From Chrysemys picta bellii (Eukaryota): 64,000 nucleotides of DNA. Positions 1,922 to 49,555 of this stretch are shown piece by piece. The notes under the pieces were generated by a model, which worked only from the letters and a program-made list of their open reading frames with translations, searched no databases and was not told the DNA's origin. The stretch covers positions 124,001 to 188,000 of the forward strand of contig NC_088810.1 of assembly GCF_011386835.1 (NCBI RefSeq). The letters are read 5' to 3'. Both the position numbers and the translations under genes were made by a program. Position 1 is the first letter of the stretch. Each line of letters starts with the position of its first letter.

Positions 1922-4231
1922 TCAGTCCCTGGAAAACTGCTCATTGAACTTCTCCTTCATCTTCTGGAATTGCTCAGAGAACCAGTTCCTGTAAGACAAG
2001 GGGAGGCAGAGGCAACGTCAGCCAGTGCGTTAGGATCCTGCACTTCCTCACCCCCCACCTCCACAGATGCTACTACGGGGATGACTGGGGGCTTTGTAAA
2101 GGGGCTGGCTGAGAAGCCCTGAGCTTTGCCCTCGTGAACAGTGCAAAGCTGCACTGATTTGAGACACTACCATCTAGGGGCGGCTAACAGAGCCAGCCTC
2201 CCTCTGGGGACAGAGCCTGGTAGATGCTGGGAAATCTCAGCCGCCACCTGGTCATTATAGTTAATTACAGCGATTTTGACACATGGCTAAGGAATGGGTT
2301 TTTCCTTTCTAGTGTAGCCGCCTCTCCTGGGAGCTGTGAGGATAATGAGGCCAACTCAGTCCCAACTGTGAACTAAATCATACTAGTTTATCCGCTGTGC
2401 CTTCCAGGCAGCAGGATTTCACAGCACTTCCCATGGGATTGCTTCACATGATACATTATTCATATTTCAGTAGTGACCTGGTTATGGGGCCCCATAGTGC
2501 CACCAAGCGCTGCACAGACCCTGACCAAGATCAAGCTCCCATCCTGCCAGCACCGCACCGGCCTGAATGAGATCAGGTGCTCCGTTGTGCCAGGTGCTGC
2601 ACACACAGAGTGAGCGCCAGTCCCTGCCTCAGCTCTGAGAGGGGGGGTATGTCCCAAGCGTGACCAATGCAGTGACATCTGCCTGAGTCTGCAGAGAGCC
2701 TGGGGGGGATCTCACTGAGGAGTTAACTCTGATGCTCAGCAATGCTCATTTAAATGTCAACATCATTTACAATGTCATCTGTCCTGTGACACCAGAGCAG
2801 GGGGGTCATGGCACTGCACAATTGACTGGAGCTGAGTGTTTGGGAAGAGCATTTCTAGCAGCACCTTCCTCAGTCTCCCAGCCAAGCCTGGAACAGTTCC
2901 CGCCTCTGCTTAGCTGCAGGTGACAGTCTCAGTGTCACTGGTTTCTGCAGGAGCCTTGCCCCCCTGCCCCGAGGCCCCTGTGACTCACCGGGTCTTTTCG
3001 CTGAACTCGCTGTGATGCAGTTCTTGGAAGGCGGCTTTGGTTTTATCTGCAATGCTGTCAGCAAAGGCCTGCAGCTTGTTCTGGAAGTTCTCCAACTTTT
3101 TGGTCAGGGTTGGCTCTGTGGGTTGAGCCTGAGCAGAGTCTGAAAGGGAGACGGAGAACGACGAATGCTACTGCCCAAACTCAACCCACCACACCCGTGC
3201 AATGTGCAAGGGCGTGTGTTTGTGTGCGTGCACATACAATGTGCCATGTATGCATGTGTGTGCAATGTGCCAGGGGCGTACGTGCATGTACATGCTCGGC
3301 TCTTTGTCTGTGTCAGTACAGTGCCCAGCAAGATGGTCCCTGATCTCGTCACTCTGTGCCTTGGAGGTGTTTCTCCACAGTCTCTGAAACATGCTTGTCA
3401 CAGGAATTCTCAGCCCTTTTCACAGTTAGCTTTTCTGCTTCTGGTACCTGGTTCTGGAGCCCCGTGAGACTTTGTGTTACTTGAGATTAATGACCCTTGA
3501 CCGTCTTTAAATGCCAGACCACCCATTGCACTCTCTCAACCCTGCCCACCCAGACTCCACACAGACGCTGGGGTGGTTGGAGCTCGGTTGCTGAGTAGCA
3601 ACCTGGGGAGGTTTTCGCTTTTTCCAGACATCTCAGGGCTACTGTTTGGCTCTGGCAGCTCAGAGATGTAATTTGCCACAGATGTGGAGCTACTCCTATT
3701 TGTGGTTTTACACACACACACACACATACGGCACAGTGTACATGCACACACACAGTACACTGTACATCCACGCACACCCTGGCACATTGCACGCATGTGC
3801 GCACACACCCGGCACACTGCAGGCGCAAAATGCATGCCCCCCCTCCCGGTTTCAATGAGCCCAGCTATTGGTGACAAGATCCCAGGCATCCCTGAGCCCC
3901 AGAGTTATTTATAATCTCTACTGAGGTGTTGCTAGGGCAGTTGTTGGTCCCATGGTGGCAGGCGCTGCATGAACACGCAGCAGAGATCAGTCCTGCCCAC
4001 CAGGGGCGAGGCAGAGACAGGATAGACGGGTCTGACATGCTCCCTGCTCCCCTCTCACCCTGGCCCACACCCTTCCCCCGGCCCCTCCCTCCCCTCTCCC
4101 AGGCACAATCTCCTCCCCTAGTCCCTGAGACCCCCATTCCCCCAGCTCTGTTTCCCTGAGGAATTGGGGCTCTTACCTGCCAGGACCGTCAGAGCCACGA
4201 GGATCAGTGCGATGGACACTGCAGGCCGCAT
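1922..4231 (-). CDS. APOC1: Apolipoprotein C-I, 3 coding exons (4231-4177, 3139-2989, 1988-1922), 90 aa precursor
   Basis: Spliced ORF 55+151+67=273 nt with GT-AG sites, phases 1 and 2: [103 protein letters not shown] matches human SELSAKMREWFSE. It lies directly downstream of APOE as in mammals. Confidence 0.92.
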
Positions 4232-4369
4232 GGTCACTGGGCTTGGCGTGTCCCTGTGGGGGGAGGAGGATGTGACCTCGAGACTGGTCCCAAATGCACC
4301 AACCTACCCTGAGGAAGGGACCCAGCCAGTGCCTCTGGCTGGGGGTTACACAGCCCTCAACGAAACACC

Positions 4370-6430
4370 CACCCCGCCCCACGTGGACCCCACTGACTCC
4401 CCCCCAATACTCCACTTCCTCCCCTGATCCTGCAGTGCCCCCCCCCCGCATGGACACCCCCCCCCAGCCCCACATGGACCCCACTGACTCCCCCCCAATA
4501 CTCCACTTCCTCCCCTGATCCTGCAGTGCCCCCCCCTCATGGACACTCCCCCCAGCCCCACATGGACCCCACTGCCTCCCCTCTACACAAACCCCACTTC
4601 CTCCCCTGATCCTACAGTACCCCCCCCCCGCATGGATACCCCCCCCAGCCCCACATGGACCCCACTGCCTCCCCTCTACACAAACCCCACTTCCTCCCCT
4701 GATCCTACAGTGACCCCCCTGCATGGACACCCCCCCCAGCCCCACATGGACCCCACAGCCTCCCCCCACAGGCCCCACTTCCTCCCCACATCCTGCAGTG
4801 CCCCCCCCACATGGTCAGCCCCCCCACCCCACATGGACCCCACAGCCTCCCCTCTACACAGACCCCACTTCCTCCCCTGATCCTACAGTGCCCCCCCCCC
4901 CGATGGACACCCTCCAAGCCCCACATGGACCCCACTGCCTCCCCTCTACACAGACCCCACTTCCTCCCCTGATCCTACAGTGACCCCCCTGCATGGACAC
5001 CCCCCCCAGCCCCACATGGACCCCACAGCCTCCCCCCACAGGCCCCACTTCCTCCCCACATCCTGCAGTGCCCCCCCCCACATGGCCAACCCCCCCCCAC
5101 ATGGACCCCCTGCCTCCCCTCTACACAGACCCCACTTCCTCCCCTGATCCTGCAGTGCCCCCCCCACATGGTCAGCCCCCCCACCCCACATGGACCCCAC
5201 AGCCTCCCCTCTACACAGACCCCACTTCCTCCCCTTATCGTACAGTGCCCCCCCCCACATGGACACCCCCCACCCCACATGGACCCCACAGCCTCCACTC
5301 TACACAGACCCCACTTCCTCCCCTGATCCTACAGTGCCCCCCCCCCCGATGGACACCCTCCAAGCCCCACATGGACCCCACTGCCTCCCCTCTACACAGA
5401 CCCCACTTCCTCCCCTGATCCTACAGTGACCCCCCTGCATGGACACCCCCCCCAGCCCCACATGGACCCCACAGCCTCCCCCCACAGGCCCCACTTCCTC
5501 CCCACATCCTGCAGTGCCCCCCCCCCACATGGCCAACCCCCCCCCCACATGGACCCCCTGCCTCCCCTCTACACAGACCCCACTTCCTCCCCTGATCCTA
5601 CAATGCCCCCCCCCCCGCATGGACACCCCCCCAGCCCCACATGGACCCCACAGCCTCCCCTCTACACAGACCCCACTTCCTCCCCTTATCCTACAGTGCC
5701 CCCCCCACATGGACACCCCCCCAGCCCCACATGGACCCCACTGCCTCCCCTCTACACAGACCCCACTTCCTCCCCTGATCCTACAGTGACCCCCCTGCAT
5801 GGACACACCCCCCAGCCCCACATGGACCCCACAGCCTCCCCCCACAGGCCCCACTTCCTCCCCACATCCTGCAGTGCCCCCCCCACATGGCCAACCCCCC
5901 CCCACATGGACCCCCTGCCTCCCCTCTACACAGACCCCACTTCCTCCCCTGATCCTACAGTGCCTCCCCCGGCATGGACACCCCCCCAGCCCCACATGGA
6001 CCCCACTGCCTCCCCTCTACACAGACCCCACTTCCTCCTCTGATCCTGCAGTGCCCCCCCTGCATGGACACCCCCCCGGCCCCACATGGACCCCACTGCC
6101 TCCCCTCTACACAGACCCCACTTCCTCCCCAGAGGGCAGTGGGTTCTCCCACTCAGGGAGTTTCAGCCCCAAGCCTGCAATGTGCTCAAATGTATCCCCC
6201 AGGCCACTCTTCCCCTCCTCACCCCACCGAGCCCCCTGCCCTCCCCACCAGGTCCCCCAGATTCCCTCCCAGTCTCCACCCCACCGAGCCCCTGCCTCTC
6301 CCCACCAGGTCCCCCAGGCCCCTCTTCCCCTGCTCACCCCACCGAGCCCCCTGCCCTCCCCACCAGGCCCCCCAGATTCCCTCCCAGTCTCCACCCCACC
6401 GAGCCCCTGCCTCTCCCCACCAGGTCCCCC
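4370..6430. repeat. C-rich minisatellite (~70-95 bp variant units with higher-order blocks) plus a small adjacent repeat, in APOC1 intron 1
   Basis: Reiterated atggacacccccccagccccacatggaccccactgcctcccctctacacagaccccacttcctcccctgatcctacagtg from ~4370 to 6130; ccccaccgagccccctgcc repeats at 6215-6430. Confidence 0.9.
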
Positions 6431-6541
6431 ATCCTGGCCAACGAGCCCCCATTCCCCTCTTTGCACACTGCTCCAGTCCCACTGCCTCCACACGCCACCC
6501 CAGCCCCACTGAGCCCCGAACACCAGCCCAGCCCCACTCAC

Positions 6542-6606
6542 TGCAGCTGGAATTAAGCAATCTCCGCAGCTGGGATGCAGCTTCCCGACCTCCAGCTCCC
6601 TATAAA
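6542..6606 (-). promoter_or_regulatory. Candidate APOC1 non-coding exon 1 and TATA-like element
   Basis: Strong donor GCA|GTGAGT at 6542/6541 and an AT-rich TTTATAG element at 6600-6606, giving a ~35-nt first exon typical of this family. The exon 2 acceptor gives an exon start at 4253. Confidence 0.45.
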
Positions 6607-25205: not shown

Positions 25206-25764
25206 ATGAAGCTTCTCACTGCTGTCCTGTTCCTGGCCGTGCTAGGTGAGTGTGTCTCGGTGCAGCCCCACGCCTGCCCCATTGGGCGCTGGCTGACAGT
25301 GTGTGTGGGGATCCCTCTGCCTGGAAGCCAGGTCTTTTGGGCACCCTCTCCCACAGGAATCAACTTTGACTTTCCAAGTGGAAACCACTAAAGTACCTGA
25401 TAGAGACTCGGTCACAGGAGCGGGGGAGAGGGGGAGGGAATGCAGCTTGGATTTGGGGGGAGCAGGAAACATGAATTAGAAACAGTGTAGCCGACTGAGC
25501 CTTTCCCAGCTCTGGGAACACCCTGCTTTGCTAAGCATTCAGCGAGGTGCTCTGTTTACTGGGTCCCGATCCATTCAATCAGGCAGAGTGCTGGCTGGGG
25601 AGTCTCAGGACTTGTCTACATTGGATGTTTCTGGCACTGGTCTAACCCTTTAGTGTGTAAAACAGTTTGCATCCGGTGTAAGACACATCCAGCTCAGAAC
25701 TGTGGTGTGCCTCACGGGTGTGAACGCTGGCTGACTGGAACACTGTCAAGGCAGCGGAAAAATC

Positions 25765-25795
<31 letters not shown>

Positions 25796-28700
25796 CCGCG
25801 GTATAAACACTTTGCACTGGTGTAAAAAGGATATTGGAGAATCGGTGGGGGCTCAAAGACGGGCAATGAGAGGGAGTCAGGGTCTGGGGAAATGCCCTGG
25901 GAGGACAGGATGAAAACACTGGGCGTGTTGTCTAAAAAGGAGACAGATAAAAGGGGATGTGATAAACATATTGTTCCCTTCTACAAGAGGCAGACAATAT
26001 CTCTCTGGCAAGGCCCCAAATCGATGGTAAGAGTCAGGTCTCGTTTTTGGTACAATCCTGTTGATTTACAGAGAATGGGCACAGAATTCCTTTCCCCTGA
26101 ACACAGCAGGAACATACAACAGCAGGTGGTTTCCTTTTCCAGAAATCCAAGCTTGCCTCTCCACCAGCTCTGTGCTCCAAGGAGCCCTAGCTCTGTTCCC
26201 TCCCAGGCCAATGCTCACAACAGCGTCTCTCCCTGTCTGCCAGCTTTGTGCCTTTGATACACACAGACATACACAGCTGCTGCCAGCCAGTGCCCCATCC
26301 CCTGCGTTTGAAATCAGTCACTAGGGAAACCCCTTGGCCCACACGGCTAAGCTTCTGCTCAGGCCTTGCCCTTCTGGTGAGTGCCTTGGGCAGTGGCTTC
26401 TCTGGTATCAGTTCTCACTACAAAAAGGGATATTTAATTGCTCTTTCTGTCAGTTTGGATGAATCAGAGAACTGAACCCTGGAAGGCACCTTAAGAGTTC
26501 ATCTAGTGCAGCCCGCTGTTCCGAGGCAACTCCAAGTAAACCTAGAGCTCACCAGTGCTAAATAGAGTGAACAGTTACCTCCTATGTCTTACATAGCACA
26601 CTCCTATTAATACACCCCAGAATGATATAAACCTTTTTTGCAGCTGCATCACATTGTTGGCTCATATTCAATTTGTGATCCACTCTAACCCCCAGATCCT
26701 TTTCAGTAGTACTACTGCCTAGCCAGTTATTCCCCATTTTGTTGTTGTTCTTTTCCTTCCTAAATTAAGTACTTTGCACTTGCCTTTATTGAATTTAATC
26801 ATGATAAATTGGAGAATTGGACAGAAATCAACAAGGTCGTTTTGAATTCTAATCCTGTCCTCCAAAGTGCTTGCAACCCCTCCCAGCTTGGTGTCATCTG
26901 CAAATGTTTAAGCATATTACCCACTCCATTCTCCAAGTCATTAATGATAATATTGACTAGTACTGAACCCAGGACAGACCCCTTTGGGACCCCACTGGGA
27001 CCCTTTGGAACCCCACTGGGACCCTATGGGACCCCTTCCAGTTTGACAAGTGCCTCATTGATAACTACCCTTTGAGGGTGATCTTTCAGCCACTTTTGCA
27101 CCCACCTAATAGCAATTTCCTCTAGACCACACTTCCCTGGTTTGCTTCTGAGAATGTCACATGGGACTGTATCAAAAGCCTTATGAAAAAATCAAGCTAT
27201 AATCACAGCTACAGCTTCCCCTCTGGCCACTAGCCCAGTAACCCTGACAAAGAAGGAACTGTCTGGGCATGATTTCTTCTTGACAAATCTCTGTTGGCTA
27301 TTTCCTAGAACCGTGGTTCGCAACGTTTTTTTTTCACGGACCACTTGAAAATTGCTGAGGGTCTCGGCGGACCACTTAATGCTCTTTTCAAATGTCGTTT
27401 GTACCATTAGCTAACTATTGTAAAGCACTTTGGATAAAAGCGCTATATAAAAATAAACTTAATTTTTTTTGTTCTACAGATAAAATAACACAACTCATAT
27501 TTTCACATCCGTAGTCTTACCTTTCTAAGGCGATAGATGTGCCCTCTCTGCCCTGCTGCGGCAGCCCCCAAGTTGGGGCTGGGAAGGGTGGGGAGGTCTC
27601 AGGAGCCACGCAGCCCCCGAGCTGGGGCTGGGAAGGAGGGGGTCTCTCCCCACCACACCAGCCCCCGAGCTGAGGTTGGAAAAGACGGATGTCTCTCCCC
27701 GGCAGCCGCAGCCCTGGAGCTGGGGAAAGTCGCCTTTCTCTGGTGGCCGCAGCCCTGCATGTCCCAAATTCCTCACACCCCCTTTTCTGACCCCACTGCC
27801 CCCTCCCACCTACCCCCCATTCTCCCCAAGGCCACCCCCTCACCTTACATGTGTGTCTTCTCCAGGGTCCAGGCACCTAATTAGTGGAGCTTGCTCAGCA
27901 GGGTGAAGGGTGCTCAGGGAACTCATCTCCAATAAGCAGGTCTGTGATCGACTGCAGGGGATCAGGATACTCTGTTCCCCCAGCTCCTACCCTTAGGACG
28001 GGGGACAGTCAATGGCAGTGCAGGTGATGAATTCAGAACCAGTGAAACGACTGTCACGGGAAGTTGCTGATGCCAAGATCTTCACAGGATTCACAGAGGC
28101 GTTTCTATGGATAACGGGAGTATCCAGAATGACCATAGTTAGAGATTTGGGAGGCGCATAAACCCGGCTGCCCCAGTGCTAACTATTAGGGTGAGGAGGA
28201 AAAATACCCACATCTGCTACTGAGGGGTTCTTGCACATTCCCCTGAACCACTGGGTGCCAGCTTCTAGATACTGGCCTTGACAAACCATGGGGCTGATCC
28301 AGTCTGCCAATCCCAGTGTCCCAGTGCCTTATCAGGAGTCTGTGGCAAAGCTGGGATAGAAGCCAGGAGTCCGGGCTCCCAGCCCCTCTGCAGTAACCAC
28401 TAGACCCCATTCCCCTCCCAGAGCTGGTTGGAACCCAGGAGTCTTAAGCCGCATCCCAGTGCAGTTAACATGTGCCCCTCCTTCCAGGGAGCGGTAGCTC
28501 AGTGGGTCTCTCCAGGCCAGGGCAGCCCTGGGGCCTGCAGTGACACTGTCTCACTGGGGATCCCTTTCCTTTCCCAGGCTCCAAGGCCTCTCCCCTCAGC
28601 AAGGAACCCACGCCAAGGCTGGACCAGGTTGCAGACGCCATCGAACGTAACTTGGAGCAACTTATCAGAATGACCGTGGAGCTGATCGAGAAATCCGAGC

Positions 28701-29637
28701 TGGGCCAGGAGATCGAGTGAGGCGCCTGCCCTGACTTGGAGGCAGGGTTTGGGAGCCCCCCTTCCATGCCAGGGACCCAGAGTAGAGGGGTTAGAGTCAC
28801 CCCTGACTGCAGGACCCACACCTCTGCTTCTGGGCCCAGCAAGCCCCCCGAGCTCAGCAGGGATTGGCCTGGCCAACCCCAGGGACGCTGGCAATTCAGC
28901 AACGGGTGCAGAATTGTGTCCATTATTTGGCATGGCAGGGCCCGATGCCGCTGGGACCTGGGGGCTGGGGCCAGATCAAAGCCAGCAACACTGGGGGTGG
29001 GGAGGACCCATATCACATTCCCAACCCCCATGAGCCAGCCAGTCCTCCTGCCCTGGGATCACATTCCCGTCCCAGACACCTCCCAATCCAGCCAATCCTT
29101 CTGCCTTGGGGTCAGACAGAGCCAGCAGCCCAGAGGGTGAGTCACTCTAAGCTGCTTCCCTTTCTTTGCAGGGAGTGGAAACTCTATTGGAAAATTAATA
29201 ACTTCTTTGATGACCTAAACCGTAAGGTGCCCCCCAAGGCCCAGGAGCAGCTGAGGAACCTGAGCAGGCCGGTGGAAGAAAGTGTGACAATGCTGTGGGA
29301 ACTGGAGAGGAAGGTGCAGCCCTACATGAACCAGCTGCGTGATGTCCTGGTGTCCTACACCGAGGGGCCGCTGGAGATGGTGGAGCACTACAGCAAGACC
29401 CTGCTTGGTAGCCAGGCGTACAGCAACGTCCCGTCTCGGGTGGAGCTGCAGGAGCAGCTGGGCTCCTATGCCCAGGAGCTGGGGCTGCAGGAGTTCGAGC
29501 GCAGTCTGGCAGCCTACACCAGGGACCTGCACCGGAAGCTCAGCCCCTATGCTGAGGACTTGCATGGCTGGCTGAACTCCCGCTGGGACGCCTTCATGCA
29601 ATGTTTCAGTGAAGAGACCGGTGGGGGTGCCTCATAG
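25206..29637 (+). CDS. ApoA-IV/A-I-like exchangeable apolipoprotein, gene A; 3 coding exons (25206-25245, 28578-28716, 29172-29637), 214 aa
   Basis: 40+139+466=645 nt, GT-AG sites, phases 1 and 2 as in all apoA/E genes. Signal MKLLTAVLFLAVLGSKA; exon 3 ends IEKSELGQEI; exon 4 is amphipathic with QPY/SPYAEDL motifs. Exon 2 starts at 25185; AATAAA at 29747. Confidence 0.85.
26465..27305 (-). mobile_element. CR1 LINE fragment with reverse-transcriptase remnant, in gene A intron 2
   Basis: Minus-strand peptide NSQQRFVKKKSC..SFFVRVTGLVARGEAV matches the CR1 RT motif; CR1 3' end near 26470. Confidence 0.8.
27305..27890. mobile_element. hAT-Charlie-like non-autonomous element fragment
   Basis: Begins ctagaaccgtggttcgcaac; internal gcggaccact motifs and ccccagc-rich segments. 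Confidence 0.45.
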
Positions 29638-33352: not shown

Positions 33353-33899
33353 CGCCAGGGGCCCTGTGCTGCAGAGCGGGGTGTATGTGTGGGGGGCTCA
33401 GTAGGAGGCGCTCCCCCCTCACAGGCAGTGCTGGCTCCAATGCAGTGCTGGGGACCTGTGCTGCAGAGCAGTGGGGAGGCTCAGTGGGGGGGGGGCTCCC
33501 GCTCACAGGCAGTGCCAGCCCCAGTGGGCCTGCACTGCAGACAGCATGGTGAGGAAAGTTGGTGAGTAACACTGGGCAGAGCTGTTTATCGGGAGGTCAC
33601 AGCAGGGCAGGGATAGCACAAGCCCTAGGGGAGAGGCTTACGGGGATCATCGTGGGGGGAGTTTCGAAGGGGAAAGGCCCCACCCAGGAGACGGCCCTAT
33701 TTCCCCCTGTCACATGTCCATGATCATGCCCCTGGCTTGCGCCCCACCCGTCGCTTGGCTAAGAGCCCGTTCTCCCTCACGGAGCGGGGCTGCACGACCC
33801 TGCCTGGGGCAAAGCCCCGAGCTGGATTATAAGAGCTGCTCCCCTCCCCCAGGGATCCAGCAGCAGCAGCAGCACAGGGGGTGATTAATCAGCAGGTGG

Positions 33900-33905
33900 T
33901 TTATT
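33900..33905 (-). terminator. Gene B polyadenylation signal
   Basis: tttatt on + at 33900-33905; minus-strand context gctcaataaaccacctg. Confidence 0.75.
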
Positions 33906-34148
33906 GAGCTCCTGGGAGGTTGTTACAGACACAGGGAGTGACTAGGGGTGATGGGACAGGGACCCTGGGCATGTCAGGGGCCCTTAGAGAGGAGGCTGCC
34001 CCCTCTCGAGCACCTGTGACCCCTGAAGGCTCCGTGCATGGATGGGGTCTGTGCTCCCAGTCCCATGGGCTCCATGGATGGATGGGGTCTGTGTCTCACC
34101 CCTCGCCCGCCTGGCTCTGTGTTCCCATCTCCCACCAGCGCCGGCCCC

Positions 34149-36267
34149 TCACTGGAAGTGCTGCAGGAAGGAGGCCCAGAGGGAGTCCAGCCGCCCCTGC
34201 AGGTCCTGGGCGTAGGGACCCAGCTGGCTGTGCAGCTGCTCCAGCAGCCCCTCGGCATAGGGTGCCAGCCCAGCCTGCAGCTCCTCCACGCTCTTCTGCA
34301 GCTCCGCGATGGATGGCTGCACCTTCTGGTTCAGCTCCCGCAGGTCCCCGGAAACCTTCTGCACCAGCAGGTCCGTGTCCTTGCTCAGCTTGGCCACCAG
34401 CTCCTGGGCCACAGCGGGCAGCTGCTTCTGCACCTCTGTGCCATAGCTGTAGGCAGCCAACAGGCTGTGGCTGACGCGGCTGCTGTGGGGACGGGGGAGC
34501 GGATGAGAAGGGAATGGGGGACAGGGCCTTGCCCCTCTATGGGGCTCTGGCTCCGATCCAGCCCCAGGGTCGGGGGGAATGGCTGGCCCAGGGGAATGGG
34601 GGACATGGGGCCTTGCCCCTCTATGGGGCTCTGGCTCCGATCCAGCCCCAGGGTCGGGAGGACTGGCTGGCCCAGGGGAATGGGGGACAGGGCCTTGCCC
34701 CTCTATGGGGCTCTGGCTCCGATCCAGCCCCAGGGTCGGGGGGAATGGCTGGCCCAGGGGAATGGGGGACATGGGGCCTTGCCCCTCTATGGGGCTCTGG
34801 CTCCGATCCAGCCCCAGGGTCGGGGGGACTGGCTGGCCCAGGGGAATGGGGGACATGGGGCCTTGCCCCTCTATGGGGCTCTAGCTCTGATCTGGCCCTA
34901 GGCGGGGGTCTGGTTGACTCAGAGGGGTGGGGAATGAGACACGGAGGCCTTTCCCTTCTATAGGCTCTGGCTCCGATCCAGCCCCAGGGCAGGGGACTGG
35001 CGACTCAGAGGGGTGGCCGGGTGGGGACACGGGGCCCTGTCATCCTGGACATGGGCTCAGTTCTGACTCAGAGGATCCCGGTGAGGGCCGGGGTTTGCTG
35101 AGCCCGGAAGCCGAGGTGTGGGGGCTGCAGTCAGGGGGGCGACTAACCTCCCCCATCTGCTCTGGGTCCATGGGGAGGATGGGAGGAGCTACCAGCCCGC
35201 AAGGTAGGGCTCCCCCCACAAGTCAGTGCCGGGTTCTCACTTGATCTCCCGGCCCAGCTCAGATTTATGGATCAGCTCCTTGATTTTCTCGGCTTTTGCC
35301 ACGTACTCCCAGAAGGCTTCCCGGACCTGCTCCAACCTCGGTGTGGGCTCATCGCTGAGGAGAGAGGCCTGGCTGCCTGTGGGGTGACAGAAATCCCCAG
35401 CAAGACCCTGTCATTGGAGGCTGCAGACCCACCCTGGGGAGACTCAGAGATGGGACTCTACAGAGCTACCTTGCTCTGCAAGGAGGGGCCAGGGCTCAGG
35501 ATTCCTGGGCCAATTCCAGGCTCTGCAATCGACTCCCCATGTGGCTTTATGAGAGTCACTTTGGGAAATTTTCAGTTTCTTATTGGAAATCAGGAGCCCC
35601 CACCACGCCGGGGGCCGCCCTGACCCCGGCCGAGCCCGGGGCTCCCCACCGCGCTGGGGGCCGCCCTGGCCCCGGGGCTCCCTACTGCGCCAGGGGCCTC
35701 CCTGACCCCGGCTGAGCCCGGGGCTCCCCACCACGCCGGGGGCCGCCCTGACCCCGGCCGAGCCTGGGGCTCCCTACTGCGCCGGGGGCCGCCCTAACCC
35801 CGGCCGATCCCGGGGCTCCCCACCGCGCCGGGGGCCGCCCTGATCCCGGCCGAGCCCAGGGCTCCCCACCGCGCCGGGTGCTGCACACACACAGTGAGAG
35901 ATGGCCGCTGCCCTAATAGAGACAGGCCGGATTATTCTCCGTATTTTACAGATGGGAGCTGAGGCCCAGAGAGATTCAGGGGCATCTCCAGGGCTACCCA
36001 GGGAGTCTGCAGCAGAGCAGGGAACTGAACCAAGAAGTCCTGAGCCCCAGCCCAGTGTATTTACCACAAGTCCCAGCTCCCAATTCTCTCCCTGCGTGCG
36101 TGGGCTCTAGATGTGTCTGTGGGCTCGAGGCCGCTGGGTAACTAAGTGTAGGGTCCCAGGCAGAGGATCCCTTATGGGGCTTCCCTAGTGGGGCAGGGGC
36201 AGGCCTGCACCAAGATGCACTCACCTGCCAGGACGGCCAGCGTCAGGACGAGAGCGAAACGCTTCAT
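34149..36267 (-). CDS. ApoA-IV-like exchangeable apolipoprotein, gene B; 3 coding exons (36267-36225, 35376-35241, 34482-34149), 170 aa
   Basis: 43+136+334=513 nt, GT-AG sites, phases 1 and 2. MKRFALVLTLAVLA/GSQASLLSDEPTPRLEQVREAFWEYVAKAEKIKELIHKSELGREI/NSRVSHS...APYAEGL...GPYAQDLQGRLDSLWASFLQHFQ*. Exon 2 starts at 36287; AATAAA at 33900. Confidence 0.9.
34505..34990. repeat. 82-84 bp minisatellite, ~5-6 units, in gene B intron 3
   Basis: gccttgcccct starts at 34526, 34610, 34692, 34776 and 34860. Confidence 0.9.
35595..35880. repeat. ~45-bp CpG-rich minisatellite, ~6 units, in gene B intron 2, L2-derived
   Basis: ccccaccacgccgggggccgccctgaccccggccgagcccggggct, ending in gccgggtgctgcacacacacagtgagag. 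Confidence 0.85.
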
Positions 36268-36773
36268 GCTGGGAGCTCCCTGAGACCCTGGTGCGATGGA
36301 GGAAAGAAGGTTAGAGCAGAGGGGGAGCAGACTGGGATGGGGGTTCTGACGGCCCAGCCGCCAGCACCTCCTGTCACGCGTTACCCTCGCACCTGGTCAC
36401 AAGCTCTTTCTGCCATCCTAGTCCAGTGCTGGAGGCGACTGCGGGGAATCCCTGGCTGCAGCCCCTGGGCTCGGGCAGGAGGGGAAACAGAGTCAGTCCC
36501 GGGGGGGTGGTGGGCAGTGAATAATTGAACCAAAAGCTCTGCAGCCTTGATTAGAATCATTGGGGGGGGGGGGGTTAATCGATCATAGCTGGGTTTAGAC
36601 ATGGGGTTTGGGGGGTCTTTCAAAAGTGTTGCTTTAAAATCTTTCCAGGGGCCTTCTCCCACCCAACAGTTCCTTGTAAATCTGGGGTCACAAGGACCCA
36701 GAGGGAACCACCCCCCTGCCTGGGGGTGAAAGCAGCTCTCTCTGCTGGGGCTGGCCTTGGTCACCGGGCACCA

Positions 36774-36796: not shown

Positions 36797-38842
36797 ATGC
36801 CATGCCCCGGGATGGCAGCATTCTACCCTGATGCAAACAACAGTGTGGGGTGAACTGGGCACTCGGGTGCCAGGATGCCCAGAAAGCGCGGCCCCCGATT
36901 AGGCACCAAAATAAGTGTCTGGCTTTTCAGGAAGGCCCGTAGCATGCGAGGGGCTGAGCAGTTTGGGATCCGCAGCCCCTTGTATTGCCAGCGCTGAAGA
37001 ACAGGGTGGCTCTGCCCGGACAGCCTGAGCCCCAGTTTGAGGGACCCACCCCACCACGAGGTGCCGTTCTCCGCACAAACCAACAGCATTTATATCCTGC
37101 CTGAGTCCAGCAGCGACTCCATGAGACCTGCGCCAAGCAGCCAAGCTACTCAGCCCCTCTCCAAGCTGTGGCTGGCCTTACCTTGCTCTGCCGGCTGCCA
37201 GGTCCCTGTCTCCTGCAGTAGGCCCTCCTGCCGCACTGCACCTGGTACCCAGGGACAGACAATAACCACAGAGAATTCCCTCTTATCTCCTCTCAAGGCC
37301 TGGCCACCCCCTGGCACAGGGCTGCAGGGGCAGCCAGTCAGAGCAGAGTGCTAAGGCGTGGGGCGTACCTCTGCTAGGTTTGTAATCCAGGGCGACATCC
37401 TTGGAGCCCCGTCCTGCCCCCAGACTGAGCCTAGCCTGGCTATGGGAGTAGAGCAGCTGCCCCCAGCCAAGTCATCCTGGGCCAGATTCTCTGCTGGTGT
37501 AAACTGGCCCAGCTTCACTGAAGTCCAGTGTCCATCCGGAGAGAATGGGAATGACAGATCTTAAAGTACCGTCATGCTTAAACCCACTGGTCCCCACTCC
37601 CAGCCCAGAGCCAGGGCGAGAACCCAGGAGTCCTGGCTCCCAGCCCCTCCCCCAGTAACCACTACATTCCATCAGCTGGTCTCAGGGTTGCATGGGGGGG
37701 TGGGAATCTGTCACTGCCCCCACTGTGGGGGGACAGACTCCTAGCCTTTCCCATTGGCTTGTCCCGCCACAGCCAGCTCTCCGCCCCTCCCCTCCCCTCT
37801 CCTTCCTCACTCCACCACCCCCACCCCCCGTCTCCCCCCCCCCCACCTGCCTGGGACCTTATCACAAAGTGTCCTTTGGTTCCCTCCTGGCCCATCCACT
37901 TCACCCTCCAACGTGGCACTGAAACAGCCTGGCCTGGTCATAGTCCACCAGGCCCAGCTCACAGGAGCGGCCGGCGCAGTGCCAAGGCTGCGGCATTATG
38001 GCCACATCGAGGCAGCAAGGAGCAGGGATGGCTGATCCTGGCCCCCACCTTCGTGGCCTGCGTCACTGGCCAGGCACAACATGCGGGCTGAGGCCCCATC
38101 CATTTCACTCGATTGCAGATGTTTTGGGGTCCCCCAAGCTCAGGGCCCTGGTACAAGTGTCTCCTCCTTCCCCCATTAGCCCTGGCCACCCCTCTCCTGC
38201 CGCAGCGCTGGCCCTGCCTTATCACAGACTGTCTGACCCAGCGCTGAGTCTCACTTTGTGACCCCAGTGGGGCCGGGGCACTCAGCACACTCCACCCCCA
38301 GCCTGGAGCAGGGATACAGGGCTTTACCCGCCAGTAACCTCCCCGCGCCGCCCACTCAGCTCACGGGGGAGTCACGGCTGGGCCATGTTCTCCAGGCTCA
38401 GTGGGTCAAAGTGCTGCAGCAGGGAGGAGCAAGGCCGGCTGGCTCTGGGGAGCTGGGCTGAGCCGGCAGTGCAGGGAGAGATACAGGCAGGGGGCGGGCT
38501 GCACAGCTGCCCTGTGCCCCTCTCACTTCCCTTTCCCGGCTCCGCCAAGAGGGGCAAGGCTGGCTGGTTACACAACCGGCGACAGGATGTGGTTACTGGA
38601 GGGTGCATGGGGTGACTGCTCTCCTGTCAGCAGCATGTTTCCGCAGCCCTCCCAGAGGTTCTCCCACCCGCTGCCTCCTTGGCATTCCTGTCTGCGCCGG
38701 ACAATCTGTACCAAGGCAGCGCAGCCCAGCGTGGTACAGGGCCAGGGGTGCTAGTGCCATTGCGGCTTTGCCTGCTGCTGTGAGAGGCTTGGCCCGAGGG
38801 CCAGGACCCTCTGCTGTAATTGGAGCAAACCCCCAGTGCCTT

Positions 38843-43463: not shown

Positions 43464-46400
43464 CTAGCCAATGGTGAGGCCGAAGCCACACTGGAACTTG
43501 TTCTTGCGGTGGTTCAGGAAGGCCCCATGGCCAGCGTCAGGGGCAGCGGCAGCAGCTTCTTCTCCAGCACCGCACCCACGATCCAATTACTGTCCACAGA
43601 GCCTGCGGCAGAGAGCAACGTTAGTGGCACTGGGAGAGGCTGGGGCGCGGGCACAGAGGGGAAGGGCGGCCTGGGGCTGCCGTACCTTTGAAGAGCAGGT
43701 TGGCCTTGGGCAAGTCAAGCTGGTAGCCAAAGGAGACGCTAGTGTCCTGCATGCGCGTGCTGGCCTCAAACTCCACGCCCACCTGCAGCTGTGGGAAGCA
43801 GGGTTAGTCTGGCGAGCAGAGCTGCCAATCGCACAGTAGGATCCCAGCCCCCCAGCTTCCACCCCTCCCCCACAGGACCCCAGCCCCCTAGCTTCCACCC
43901 CTCCCCCACAGGACCCCAGCCCCCTGGCTTCCACCCTCCCAATGTGATCCCACCCTCCCCAAACACTATCCCAGACCACCCACCCCCAACGTAATCCCAG
44001 CCCTCACCACCCAAACCCAGCCCCCAGCCTTCCCCAATGGGATGGCAGCCTCCAGGCTTGCTGCTCCAAATTGTCTGCATCGACTGTTCCTGGGCAGGGC
44101 ACCCCCCCACTCCCTTGCCTGCCCAGGCTCTCAGCTGTGCACCACAGCACATCGCTTATACATAGCTCTCCACACGTCACCTGCCCCCACCCCTTGCTCC
44201 CAGACTGGGGGCCAAAGCCCCACGCTCATGTCAAAGGGGGAGCCAGATGGGAACGTAAGCCTCTGAGTGCCACATACCTGGTCATTGGCTTTATGGTAGT
44301 AGGTTGCATGGGCCCCGGCTTGCCCCACCGTCAAGGTCCCAATCCAGTTAGGTGCTGTGTGGAGAAGGGAAGAGTGTGTGAGTGTCCAAGTAGGGCCCCA
44401 CCGAAGCCCTGAGCTAGGGAAGGGAACCCAGGAGTCTCGACTCCCAGTCCCCTTGCTCTAACCCACTAGACCCCACTCCCCTGCTGGAGCTCAGGATATA
44501 ACCCAGGAGTCCTTCCCCAGCTCCCTCAGTACCTGTGTATTTCCCAGCCAGAGACATGACGGTGCCCTCCTCTCCTGGCCGGCGGTGATAGACCAGCTCG
44601 CCGCCCAGCGCCAAGCAGGGTGTGATGCTCTGTAGGTAATGGGCTACCAGGATCCCTGCGAAGAGAGACTCGTCAGCTGGGGCTGGGCCCAGGAGGTTAT
44701 GAGGGGCAGGGTTCAGACTAGTGGTGACGGTAGGCAGGGGCCAGGTTGGAGAGCTGGAGGGAGGGGAAGTGGAGGTGTCAGAGGCTGGGAATTGAGAAGG
44801 GGAGGCAGGAGTCAAGCTGGTGGGGGACTTCAGAGACGGGGTAGAATTTCAGAGCAGGAGCTTCAGAGGTGGGAACGAGGCTTTCACCTGAGCCCACCAG
44901 GATGTCGGGGTTTCCCAGCGTCACTGCTGCCGTGAAATCCTCCCCCCGATACTCTCCATCCACCTGCCAGTTCACGAACTTGGACTGCTGCGTCTGGAAT
45001 GAGAGTGGGGGGACATGATGAGACCGTGGCAACCCCCAGGAGGCACACATCCCCCAGAGGCAGATTTACCATGAAAGAAACAGTGCGGTGGCATGGGGCC
45101 CCCAATGACTGGGGGGTGGGGGGGGACACCCAAAATGCAGGACAAACCTCATCGACAACCTGCCCCCGAGGCCTGGCCGGCAGCACAGCAGGGATCAGGC
45201 AGGCAGGCTGCCTGCATTCGGTGGCCAGTGGCCCCATGCCATTCCCGGAAGCACCCGGCTGCTGGAAGCGGCTCTGCATCCTGCCCCCACCAGCACACAG
45301 AGAGCCACTCCCCCCCCCACCCCCCACCCCCAGGGGTGCGCAGAGACGTGCCACCAACAGTGCAGCAGGGCTAAGGCACCTCCCTGTTCGCGCTGCCTCC
45401 CTCCCTCCGCTCCCAGAAGCGGTCGGCATGTCCCTGCGGCCTCTGGGGGAAAGGTGGGTGGTGTCTCTGTGCATTTTCCCCACCCGGAGCACTGACTCCA
45501 CAGCTCCCATTGGCCAGGAACTGCGGCCAATGGGAGCTGCGGGGGCCACACCTGCGGGCAGTGGCGCACAGAGATTCCCCTGGCCCCCCTGCCAGAGGAG
45601 TGTGCCAGTCACTTTGGGAGCCGCACTGCCCAAGGTAAGCGCCGACCCCCCCGACCCCTCCCACACCCCAACTCCCTGCCCCGAGCCTACACCCAAACTC
45701 CCTCTCAGAGCCCAATCCCCACATCCCAACCCACTGCCCCAATCAAGGTACCTCACTTGATTTTCATTTACTTCCTATTAGTTATAATATAGGAGAAGAA
45801 TGAAGAAAAAAAATAAATGAAAAATAGAGGGGATATAAGAGAGAATGTTCTTTCTCTTGGCTGGGTCCCGAGGCGGGGCCCCTCAAAATGAAGCTGTGCA
45901 CAGGGCCCCACTAACTCTAAATCTGCCACTGACATCCCCGCTCCTTTTACCAGGTAACACCATTACCTTAAACTGTGAGGGAGCAGCCACACTGCACTCA
46001 CTCCCCTCCCCAGCCAGGACTCTGACGACTCTGACAGGGGTATACACAGTCCCTCTGATCCCCCCCACCCCACCCCAAAGGGACAAGCTGAGAGACAGCT
46101 CTGCGGGGGGTATACACAGACGCTCTGATTTTCCTCCCCCCCCAAAGGGACGGGCTGAGAGACAGACCGGCAGGGGGTATACACAGACGCTCTGACTCAC
46201 ACACACACACACCCCCCGCCGCAAAGGGACGGGCTGAGAGATGGACCTGCGGGGGCCGGGGGTATACACAGACACTCTGACACCCCCACCAGCCCGGCCC
46301 CCACAAAGGGGAGGGTGGATAGAAGGACCCACGGGGGATGGGGGGGGGAATACACAGATGCTCTGACACACACACCTGTGAAGGGGCGGGTTGAGAGATG

Positions 46401-49400
46401 GACCTGCAGGGGGTATACACAGACACTCTGATCCCCCCACTCTGCAAAGGGATGGGCTGAGATGGATCTGCAGGGTGGGGGGAAGATACATAGACGCTCT
46501 GACACACACCCACACACACACCCTCTGTGACGCAGGAGGGAGCGGGGTGGATTGACCTGGGAATGTCTTTTAGTTTTACTGGGATTGTCTGCATGGGTGA
46601 TGGGAGAGCAGGGAGTGACTTTAGGTGAGGGACGGTACCTGAGCCTGTAACCTGAGGAGGCGGGGGAGTGGACACCTTTGCCTGGGAAGCTGGACAAAGG
46701 GAAAGGGTGAGAGAAGAAGGGGGAGAGTCTGCTGGAGGGGTTTATGGTTTCAGATTTGGGCTGGCTGGGAAGAGGCAGGGAACCCCAAGTCTGGGGTCTA
46801 CGCTCCTTGCCCCCGAGAGGGACCTGGCTGAGGGGTCCTGGTTGTACCTACAGTCCCTGCTTGGGACTGTGTTCCTGTCATCTAATAAACCTTCTGTGTT
46901 ACTGGCTGGCTGAGAGTCCCGGGGAATCGCAGGAAGGGGGGGTGCAGGGCCCTGACTCCCCCACACTCCGTGACACCCCCATGAAGGGGAAGGCTGAGGG
47001 AAAGACCTGCATGGGGGGGCTGGGGAAAGAGAAGACTACACAGATGCTCTGACACACACAAACCCATATGCACCCCACAAAGGGGCAGACTGAGATAAGG
47101 ACCCATGGGGGCAGGGGGGAGAGAAGAGAATACACAGATGCTCTGACACACGGGCGAGCTGAGAGAAGGACCCGAGGGGTGTGGGTGTATATTTGGGGGG
47201 GGGGGGCACACAGATGCTCTGACACACACAAACCCATATGCACCCGCAAAGGGGCAGACTGAGATAAGGACCCATGGGGGCGGGGGGGAAGAGAAGAGAA
47301 TACACAGATGCTCTGACACATGGGCGAGCTGAGAGAAGGACCCGAGGGGTGTGGGTGTGTATTCGGGGGGGGGGGGGGGGGGGGGAGGGGAGGGGACACA
47401 CAGATGCTCTGACACACACAAACCCATATGCACCCGCAAAGGGGCAGACTGAGATAAGGACCCATGGGGGCGGGGGGGAAGAGAAGAGAATACACAGATG
47501 CTCTGACACATGGGCGAGCTGAGAGAAGGACCCGAGGGGTGTGGGTGTGTATTCGGGGGGGGGGGGGGGGGGGGGGGGGGGAGGGGACACACAGATGCTC
47601 TGACACACACACAGCCATGAAGGGGAGGACTGAGAGAAGGACCCGCGGTGTGCGGCATACCTGGAAGGCCACCTTGGAGCGCAGCCGGGTCGAGAGCTGG
47701 TGGATGATCTGGGCATTGAGGCTGCCACTGTTATCCATGTCGCCCACCAGCACCGGGAATGCCTGGAAGGGGCATGAGGGGGTGAAATATAGTTGAATAA
47801 CAGCCCCACCCCATATCAGGGCAACAGCATCCCTCTGCCCCACCCCCACCCAGAGCAGCCTGCCTCGCCCCAAACTTCCCCACTGTCTGAATTGACAGCC
47901 CCAACCCCAATGTCCAGATTAACAACTCTGTCCCCAAACACACACTGCCCCTCTCCCACCATCAGAGGTGGCTCCTCAGCGCTGGCTTCCGGCCGGCTAA
48001 GTCCACTCCCCCCGGCACTCACCTCTGTGGGGCTGAGCTGCTTGGTGCCCACGTAGGTGACCCCGAAGTGATAGCTGGAGTCACCAACAGTGCTGAGGGC
48101 GACGCTGTGATTCACCTGGGGAAAGCAGGTGGAGTAAGCAGGGCCCACCAAATCCTGTGTCTTGGCAGGGGTTACACTAGACTACTGGTTCTCAATCAGG
48201 GGTCTGGGACCCACTGGGGGACCGTGAGCAGGTTTCAGGGTGTCCGCCAAGCAGGGCCGGCATTGGACTTGTGGGGGCCCAGGACAGAGAGCCGAAGCCC
48301 GAGCTAATTAGCTTCATGGGGTCCCCATGGCATGGGACCCAGGACAATTGCCCGGCTTGCTACCCCCAACACTGGCCCTGGCTTTTATATGCAGAAAATC
48401 AGTGGTTGTGGCATAGACGGGCCATGGAATTTTTATAGCCTGTTGGGGGGCCTCAGAAAGAAAACGGTTGAGAACCCCTGCACTAGACCACACTTGCGGT
48501 CCCTTCTAGCCCCATGGTTCTATGCCTGCAGCCAGAGGGGAAGGGCAGCCCAGGGGCGCTGGCATGGGAGACCCAGGTTCAGGTACCTAAAGTGACTGCA
48601 TCTCTCTGGGCCTTGGCTCCCATCTCACATGCGGCCAGTCACCTTGCCTGCCTCCCAGGAAGCATGGGGATGAATGCATTAGACTGCAAGGGGTCAGATA
48701 TAGGGATGAAGGGCGCCAGATAAGTACCTCACACAGAAAGCACCAACCCACAACCTCACCCAGCCCCAGACACGACACATGGGATCGGGAGGTTTGGGGT
48801 CACGTGCCCCCACATTTACTGCTTGGCTTGTAGAGAATGCTCAGTAACATTGCTGAAGCCAGCTGCCCTCAATCTGCACCCCTGCCCCCCCAGCAGACAT
48901 GTCTGTGCCCAGCCCGCTCAGCCCCCACATCCTCCTCGACTATAGCCTCACCCCCCTCCACCCCCACCCCGTACCCTGCTTCACCAGAGGGCACAGCCCT
49001 TACCTGGAAATGGTTGCTAAGACCTTTATTCACTGTCAGTTTCACACCTTCCATCTGGATGGGGAACAATTCTGGGGAAGAGACTGCAACAATCAGCACT
49101 GAGCCCGTCCAGCCCAGCGTGCCTTCACCCCATGGGTCCCTCCAGCCTGCTGGTAACTCCCTTCCCCCAATCATACCCCTGGGCTGTCCAGCCTGGTACC
49201 CTCCCCGCTCTCCCAAGGACCTGCCCACCTGGCTGTGTACTGGGGTGCCCCATGCTGTGCTCCCAACCTCTGCACTTGGGGTAACATTCCTTAAGGTGCC
49301 AGGACAGAGGGGTGGGTGGGTGGGTGTGTAGACAGTGGGTTCCAGGCTTTCACCTTTGCACTTGCGGTGACATTCCTCAAAGGTGCCAGGGTTGGGTAGC

Positions 49401-49555
49401 CGATCCCCCTTCTCCTCCGGCCGCTCCTGCGCAGGGGGGCCCAGCCCGCTGACGGGGGGCATGGTGAAGCCAGGCGGCACTGACACCAGCCCAGATCCAG
49501 GACTCGGCATGGTGGGGGAGGGTGTGGGGGAGCTGGCGGCCAGGACGTTACCCAT
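43464..49555 (-). CDS. TOMM40: Mitochondrial import channel Tom40; 9 coding exons (49555-49354, 49071-49004, 48115-48023, 47762-47661, 44993-44888, 44655-44533, 44354-44278, 43788-43686, 43602-43464); 337 aa if one missing base in the last exon is restored
   Basis: MGNVLAAS...[38 protein letters not shown]/... /[10 protein letters not shown]...[15 protein letters not shown]. Internal exon sizes 68, 93, 102, 106, 123, 77, 103 match human as I recall it. The last exon is 139 nt rather than 140 (see finding). Confidence 0.97.
45930..47640. repeat. Complex minisatellite in a TOMM40 intron, split by a solo LTR
   Basis: Core tacacaga(c/t)gctctgacacac on both sides of 46526-46975; ~185-bp higher-order unit x3 at ~47030-47595. 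Confidence 0.85.
46526..46975 (+). mobile_element. Solo LTR (450 bp)
   Basis: TGtgac...gtgaCA termini, internal AATAAA at 46884, flanks ccctc/ccccc (4 of 5 match). Confidence 0.7.
48183..48480. mobile_element. hAT-Charlie MITE with perfect 8-bp TSD, in a TOMM40 intron
   Basis: TSD cactagac at 48175-48182 and 48481-48488; TIR tactggttctcaa / ttgagaacccctg. Confidence 0.8.

Follow-up and report, generated by a model that had tools for sequence, protein, structure and literature searches.

A probable fish apoA-IV-lineage apolipoprotein gene beside APOE in turtles, with a shortened last exon in pond turtles

Results

Gene structure and transcripts of gene B

We analysed a 64,000-nucleotide stretch of the Chrysemys picta bellii genome (NCBI RefSeq assembly GCF_011386835.1, contig NC_088810.1, positions 124,001 to 188,000 of the forward strand), hereafter referred to as the window. 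Read along its minus strand, the window carries TOMM40, an apolipoprotein gene that we call gene B, a second apolipoprotein gene in reversed orientation (gene A), and APOE. Gene B had been proposed, from the letters of the DNA alone, to encode a compact protein of 170 residues resembling fish apoA-IV, and we established its exons, splicing, expression, homology, tree position, synteny, deletion, and amphipathic periodicity. These results make it quite probable that gene B specifies a secreted, exchangeable surface apolipoprotein of the high-density lipoprotein (HDL) or chylomicron type, which belongs to the fish apoA-IV lineage and has been shortened in pond turtles.

The coding sequence of gene B is divided among three exons on the minus strand (36267-34149) and comprises 513 nt, i.e., 170 codons and a stop. 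All introns are of the GT..AG type, and the coding introns are in phase 1 and then phase 2, the codons split at the exon joints giving G15 and N60. A non-coding exon 1, which belongs to the 5' untranslated region (UTR), lies at 37182-37306 on the minus strand, its 5' limit being only the end of an RNA contig. This exon was recognized from 123 extra letters of a contig of run X1 past 36289, the first 30 of which map uniquely to 37184-37213; we infer that the full stretch covers 37184-37306, and the donor site is AG/GTAAGG at 37182/37181. Exon 2 (36225-36287, minus strand) opens with 20 nt of 5' UTR, after which come the start codon (ATG, 36267-36265) and the larger part of the signal peptide, from M1 up to the initial base of G15; its coding part (36267-36225, 43 nt) ends in phase 1 at the donor G/GTGAGT, and contig pieces in three runs span 36224-36289. 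Exon 3 (35241-35376, minus strand; 136 nt, ending in phase 2), which has RNA joints on both sides, encodes the end of the signal peptide and an N-terminal helix with the motifs DEPTPRLEQ..AFWEYVAKA..SELGREIN. The coding part of exon 4 (34149-34482, minus strand; 334 nt including the TGA at 34151-34149) encodes 110 residues that form ten units of 11, with prolines at positions 82, 116, 134, and 149. The 3' UTR (33899-34148, minus strand) has at least 250 nt with an AATAAA signal at 33905-33900, and contigs reach 33899 (X1) and 33926 (X3).

The acceptor of exon 4 is of the NAGNAG kind (AG at 34484-83 and at 34481-80), and only the upstream one was seen in Chrysemys contigs (exon start 34482). 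Two Gopherus RefSeq isoforms (314 vs 315 residues) differ by a single serine, as a choice between NAGNAG acceptors would give. Tandem repeats, namely a G+C-rich one of 46 or 92 bp at 35606-35929 in intron 2 and one of 84 bp in 5.9 copies at 34510-35001 in intron 3, occupy much of both introns and hold long open frames on both strands. A 235-residue open reading frame (ORF) at 34149-34856, which fuses exon 4 to translated intron repeats, was rejected as spurious.

Sequencing runs supplied the evidence for splicing. Eighteen runs contain the last exon, and four of them, each from a different study, were examined. Contigs of runs X1, X3, and X15, which represent three studies, have the joints 34482 to 35241 and 35375/6 to 36224/5, both bounded by CT..AC on the plus strand, that is GT..AG on the minus strand. 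A single X1 contig of 908 nt spans all four exons, exon 4 starting at 33899 in it. Intron-free contigs in three small studies are hard to explain otherwise than by spliced RNA.

Gene B is already present in RefSeq under inconsistent and misleading names. The exon translations are exact substrings (offsets 0, 15, and 60) of XP_065430819.1 (170 residues, Chrysemys picta bellii), an automatic prediction of gene B itself that is called 'apolipoprotein A-I-like isoform X5', a name which points to APOA1. Whole-protein analyses used this record, and the window exons were searched one by one and never joined. The RefSeq isoforms X1-X4 (213-227 residues; 37182-38110, minus strand) start at upstream ATGs and continue across the 5' UTR exon, so that the signal peptide would come to lie inside the protein; these longer forms were rejected, as the RNA contig backs the UTR exon and gives no evidence for longer proteins. 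The orthologues are named 'apolipoprotein A-I-like' in Chrysemys, 'apolipoprotein Eb-like' in Trachemys and Malaclemys, 'A-IV-like' in Gopherus, Chelonia, and Rhineura, and 'uncharacterized protein' in Caretta and Lepidochelys, and none of these names fits the placement found here. No paper describing the reptile genes A or B was found in the literature.

Family membership and protein features

The Apolipoprotein A1/A4/E profile PF01442 matches exon 4 alone with an E value of 1.3e-16 and the whole protein with 5.5e-16, both of them significant. Full-length orthologues score above the gathering score of the profile (Gopherus 145, Rhineura 129, and the catfish Silurus 161 bits). In a ranking against proteins of solved structure, human APOA4 comes first (2.8e-21), followed by APOA1 (2e-9) and APOE (5e-8). 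Matches to NCBIfam, a library whose models describe prokaryotic families, were chance coiled-coil similarities only and were rejected. The gene also matches the four-exon layout of exchangeable apolipoprotein genes, all three introns being given by RNA contigs, and its intron phases, 1 and 2, coincide in aligned position with those of gene A and the APOE of the window. Identity between gene B and this APOE is 28%.

The N-terminus of the protein (MKR, a hydrophobic core, and GSQA) can be aligned with the signal peptide of every relative, and cleavage is likely to follow SQA18. For the mature chain, the helical hydrophobic moment averages 0.323, compared with 0.206 +/- 0.030 in 1000 shuffles (z 4.0), and its hydrophobicity spectrum contains one sharp peak, at 100 degrees. 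The peptide stretches quoted in advance for this protein all occur in the exon translations, and, as had been described, a single 33-residue block (116-148) beyond P116 is followed by the last 22-residue helix, which starts with PYAQDL (149-170). Cysteine and an LRKLRKR-type basic cluster are both absent, in agreement with the same description; the APOE of the window has LRKLRKR.

Phylogenetic placement of gene B

We searched 1.8 billion protein representatives by phmmer with exon 4 (110 residues) as query and obtained 45 matches, among which turtle orthologues and an orthologue of 252 residues from the amphisbaenian Rhineura come first, followed by teleost apoA-IV at E values of 1e-14 to 1e-9 (including Oryzias at 1e-14, Silurus at 6e-11, and a catfish protein named 'apolipoprotein A-IV a'). 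Alligator APOA4 (2e-6) and mammalian APOA1 (8e-6) appear after the teleosts, and no APOE is found at E <=1e-3 among the 45 matches. No mammalian, avian, crocodilian, or amphibian member of the lineage was detected by this search, which used a 110-residue query against annotated proteins only. Word-indexed protein searches (5, 6, and 28 matches), which are insensitive here, found no zebrafish, coelacanth, amphibian, or crocodilian member; the argument is carried by the full HMMER search. Exon 3 is 52% identical to the corresponding apoA-IV exon of Silurus (tblastn).

Three maximum likelihood (ML) trees that differ in alignment and column set were built from 36, 41, and 39 rows. The 41-row tree additionally includes the last exons of alligator APOA1 and APOA5 (taken from the alligator APOA4 locus, L004) and the window exons as separate rows, and the 39-row tree is based on another alignment, trimmed to the mature emydid protein (152 columns). 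A catfish 'apolipoprotein A-IV a' stood in for zebrafish, no sequence of which was among the matches listed, and the tree groups were partly named after the hit lists had been seen. In all three trees, teleost apoA-IV, reptile B, reptile A, and an 'apoA-IV-like' protein of the ray Narcine form one clade (support 96/96, 94/99, and 95/92), outside which tetrapod APOA4, APOA1, APOA5, and APOE fall; APOE sequences of reptiles and fish constitute a 100/100 clade of their own. Uniting the reptile genes with tetrapod APOA4 in one clade is rejected by the approximately unbiased (AU) test (p 0.0037, log-likelihood difference 23.6), and so is uniting them with APOE (p 0.022, log-likelihood difference 13.7). 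Placement with tetrapod APOA1, APOA5, or APOE had been named in advance as the outcome that would speak against a fish-type apoA-IV; the best non-reptile matches, the three trees, and the AU tests agree on teleost apoA-IV instead. The N-terminal pattern given for teleost apoA-IV in the earlier description is matched by a real teleost sequence, that of Silurus.

The closest known proteins are those of teleost apoA-IV, a group that includes zebrafish apoa4a and apoa4b.1-3, the catfish protein, and apoA-IV of Silurus, Oryzias, Anguilla, and Conger. Comparison with teleost apoA-IV reveals a collinear alignment from signal peptide to C-terminus, the same exon structure, and common motifs at both ends (N-terminal DEP.P.LEQ..AFW.YVAKA and C-terminal PYAQDL...L.SLW.SF), whereas identity is only 36-42% and the emydid protein is shorter (170 vs 231-264 residues). 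Tetrapod APOA4, including the human protein, shares proline-punctuated amphipathic 22-mers and the N-terminal ..W.Y... and KSEL motifs with gene B but has 320-396 residues, lies between APOC3 and APOA5, and belongs to a separate clade. APOE is the neighbouring gene on the strand of gene B and a member of its Pfam family, with identical intron phases, yet it has the LRKLRKR receptor-binding motif and about 300 residues and also forms a separate clade.

Genomic context

Gene B shares its strand with TOMM40 (44414-49555, minus strand), which was recognized from its ORFs and a weak Porin_3 match and lies upstream, and with APOE (14566-17440, minus strand), which lies downstream. Gene A (25206-29637, plus strand), a diverged paralogue with the same intron phases, is arranged tail to tail with gene B. 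In Caretta, the order TOMM40-B-A is the same, with the TOMM40 neighbour called as Porin_3 and APOE located beyond the 10-kb flank. The teleost Astyanax has a fish apoA-IV gene encoding 244 residues at a distance of 7 kb upstream of apoEb, with both genes on one strand, which mirrors the position of gene B relative to APOE. Alligator keeps a conventional APOA1-APOC3-APOA4-APOA5-ZPR1 cluster. No expected neighbour was found within 10 kb of Silurus apoA-IV, Polypterus apoE, the Rhineura orthologue, or Phrynocephalus APOE, and such blanks say little because these flanks are short. Previous studies reported that zebrafish apoA-IV genes have synteny in common with human APOE and not with APOA4 (Otis et al. 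2015, PMC4348566) and that the zebrafish apoeb-apoc1 cluster contains apoa4b.2 (PMC8822359).

Gene A is only 28% identical to gene B in the last exon. Its orthologues, which are present in sea turtles and Emydura, form a 100/100 clade beside the B orthologues. Turtle A and turtle B are sister groups in the trees, with Rhineura outside them, yet in Rhineura the B orthologue is followed by a convergent second apolipoprotein gene. Between these two Rhineura genes, an apolipoprotein-like fragment (locus L001, 18804-19046, minus strand) is 38% identical over 84 residues to the middle of Caretta B and may be a remnant exon.

The window as a whole contains no N and is vertebrate DNA of high G+C content. 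Short tandem repeats form long runs at 15821-16805, within an APOE intron, and at 4100-6600, near the window start, and the proline- or glycine-rich ORFs of 200-500 residues found there on both strands look like repeat artefacts and not genes.

Contraction of the last exon in emydids

Counted from a common start, gene B encodes 170 residues in each of Chrysemys, Trachemys, and Malaclemys, and so falls short of the precursor length of about 230-265 residues that is typical of fish-type apoA-IV. Other orthologous precursors are considerably longer, with 251 residues in Gopherus, 252 in Rhineura, 237 in Caretta, 259 in Lepidochelys olivacea, and 231 in Chelonia, and those of teleost apoA-IV have 231-264. 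The difference is located mainly in the last exon, which encodes 110 residues (10 units of 11) in the three emydids and 187 residues (17 units of 11) in Gopherus and Rhineura; sea turtles have 167-195 residues, which is not a whole number of 11-residue units. The net loss in emydids is thus exactly seven 11-residue units, in frame, so that the register of the helix is preserved, and exon 3 has four residues fewer. In a DNA alignment with Caretta, the ends and flanks of the last exon are well conserved and its interior is rearranged between PYAxxL-type repeats; the loss probably arose by unequal recombination between such repeats.

The number of repeats in gene B also varies between closely related turtles. 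Lepidochelys olivacea has a perfect extra 22-residue unit relative to Caretta (259 vs 237 residues), and the green turtle copies differ again.

The size of 170 residues results from a recent contraction in emydids, starting from about 250 residues, and is not a primitive design. Of the earlier description as a compact, minimal apolipoprotein, the length itself is real, but the protein owes it to a change specific to emydids. Proteins of the APOC and APOA2 types are shorter still.

Discussion

The evidence presented here suggests that gene B would be translated into a 170-residue precursor, from which removal of an 18-residue signal peptide would leave a mature chain of about 152 residues that is predicted to be almost entirely amphipathic alpha-helix, built of 11-residue units broken by prolines. 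Judging from homology and periodicity, the protein may be secreted, bind lipid, and have a physiological role; like its relatives, it would associate reversibly with phospholipid at the surface of lipoproteins, without the receptor-binding motif of APOE and without a cysteine for disulphide dimers. Genes A and B most probably both belong to an apoE-adjacent lineage that is named apoA-IV in fish and is distinct from tetrapod APOA4, and turtles and at least one squamate have retained this apoE-linked lineage. In pond turtles, the last exon of gene B has lost a net seven 11-residue units and its exon 3 four residues.

Several observations weigh against this interpretation. The whole protein reaches only 59.3 bits, compared with a Pfam gathering score of 90, and covers positions 8-109 of the 190 in the profile; the internal deletion, which leaves only part of the profile covered, accounts for this low score. 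The AlphaFold2 model (from a 20-row alignment) is all-helical but has low confidence (predicted local distance difference test, pLDDT, 43.7). The ratio of non-synonymous to synonymous substitution rates (dN/dS) is 0.99 against Caretta (138 alignable codons) and 0.54 against Trachemys, the latter calculated from only 5 non-synonymous and 3 synonymous changes. The trees contain no rows of the apoE-linked lineage from zebrafish, coelacanth, gar, amphibians, or crocodilians and are thin in APOA1 (three rows) and APOA5 (one row), with no fish apoA-I, and the repeats leave the middle of the alignment ambiguous. In the squamate orthologue, no linkage to APOE or TOMM40 was seen within 10 kb. Moreover, the sequencing runs were only guessed to be RNA, and contig depth is not a measure of expression.

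Some of these points could also be explained if the emydid copy were in decay, i.e., still transcribed but drifting neutrally, with no role in lipoproteins after the loss of 77 residues of the lipid-binding domain. The two dN/dS values, a Pfam score under the threshold with half of the domain left, and the unstable number of repeats among turtles (precursors of 170 to 259 residues) are what such decay might produce. On the other hand, Chrysemys, Trachemys, and Malaclemys share an open frame and an identical architecture, a net loss of exactly seven units preserves the helix register, the splice sites are canonical with fully spliced transcripts in three studies, exons are conserved above introns (98.4% identity between Chrysemys and Trachemys, compared with 95.5-96.5% for the gene region), and the amphipathic periodicity is strong. 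Gene A has a similarly high dN/dS against Caretta (0.80) without such a deletion, implying that rapid change characterizes the lineage and is not tied to the deletion. We therefore regard decay as unlikely. Constraint on individual residues of gene B appears weak from these comparisons; the frame and the splice sites have been preserved, as have transcription, the register of the helix, and its amphipathic character. Such a pattern fits a surface-active helix protein and also leaves room for a loss of role.

Another explanation would be that gene B is a displaced paralogue of tetrapod APOA4, copied in reptiles from the APOA1-APOC3-APOA4-APOA5 cluster to the APOE locus. It is true that human APOA4 is the best match among solved structures and that several databases label the orthologues 'apolipoprotein A-IV(-like)'. 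However, this origin is rejected by the AU test, each of the three trees places tetrapod APOA4 elsewhere, alligator has its true APOA4 between APOC3 and APOA5-ZPR1, and teleost apoA-IV precedes tetrapod APOA4 in the phmmer search by 5 to 8 orders of magnitude, all of which makes it very improbable. It is hardly credible that gene B arose only in reptiles, by tandem duplication of APOE, with loss of the receptor-binding region and no more than a resemblance to apoA-IV: such an origin would account for the adjacency of the two genes on one strand, their identical intron phases, and the presence of the N-terminal DEP...FW.Y..K pattern in non-mammalian APOE as well, but identity to the APOE of the window is low, APOE is missing from the phmmer matches and has its own fully supported clade, the AU test rejects the grouping, teleosts have the same apoA-IV-then-apoE arrangement, and the present trees already indicate that the lineages separated before the fish-tetrapod split.

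Gene B is thus best understood as a relative of teleost apoA-IV, which occupies the same place upstream of apoE on the same strand and the same clade in the three trees, and does not represent a novel type of molecule. On the simplest interpretation, genes A and B are survivors of the apoE-linked lineage and were not 'inserted' next to APOE. Beyond this, it is moderately likely that fish 'apoA-IV' and the reptile genes A and B together represent an old apoE-linked lineage, which is not orthologous to mammalian APOA4 and survives in turtles and squamates. It has been noted that the zebrafish 'apoA-IV' genes lie in the APOE neighbourhood and that their tie to amniote APOA4 is tenuous (PMC4348566), and our results extend this observation to amniotes. 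They also clarify a muddle of naming, in which a single orthologous gene has been given four kinds of annotation name.

In zebrafish, a high-fat meal induces ApoA-IV, and overexpression of the protein reduces food intake (PMC4348566); the turtle gene is known here from its sequence and transcripts. An amniote that possesses both the APOA4-type cluster lineage and the apoE-linked lineage allows orthology and gene loss to be dated, which matters for the transfer of results on fish ApoA-IV to mammals. The emydid protein further provides a natural deletion series (10 units, compared with 17 in Gopherus and Rhineura) bearing on how many amphipathic repeats are needed. Overall, the locus is of moderate interest for apolipoprotein evolution. 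If the old apoE-linked lineage is real, work on zebrafish apoA-IV would model a gene that is no longer present in mammals, and the turtle locus would be the amniote link that makes the question of orthology testable.

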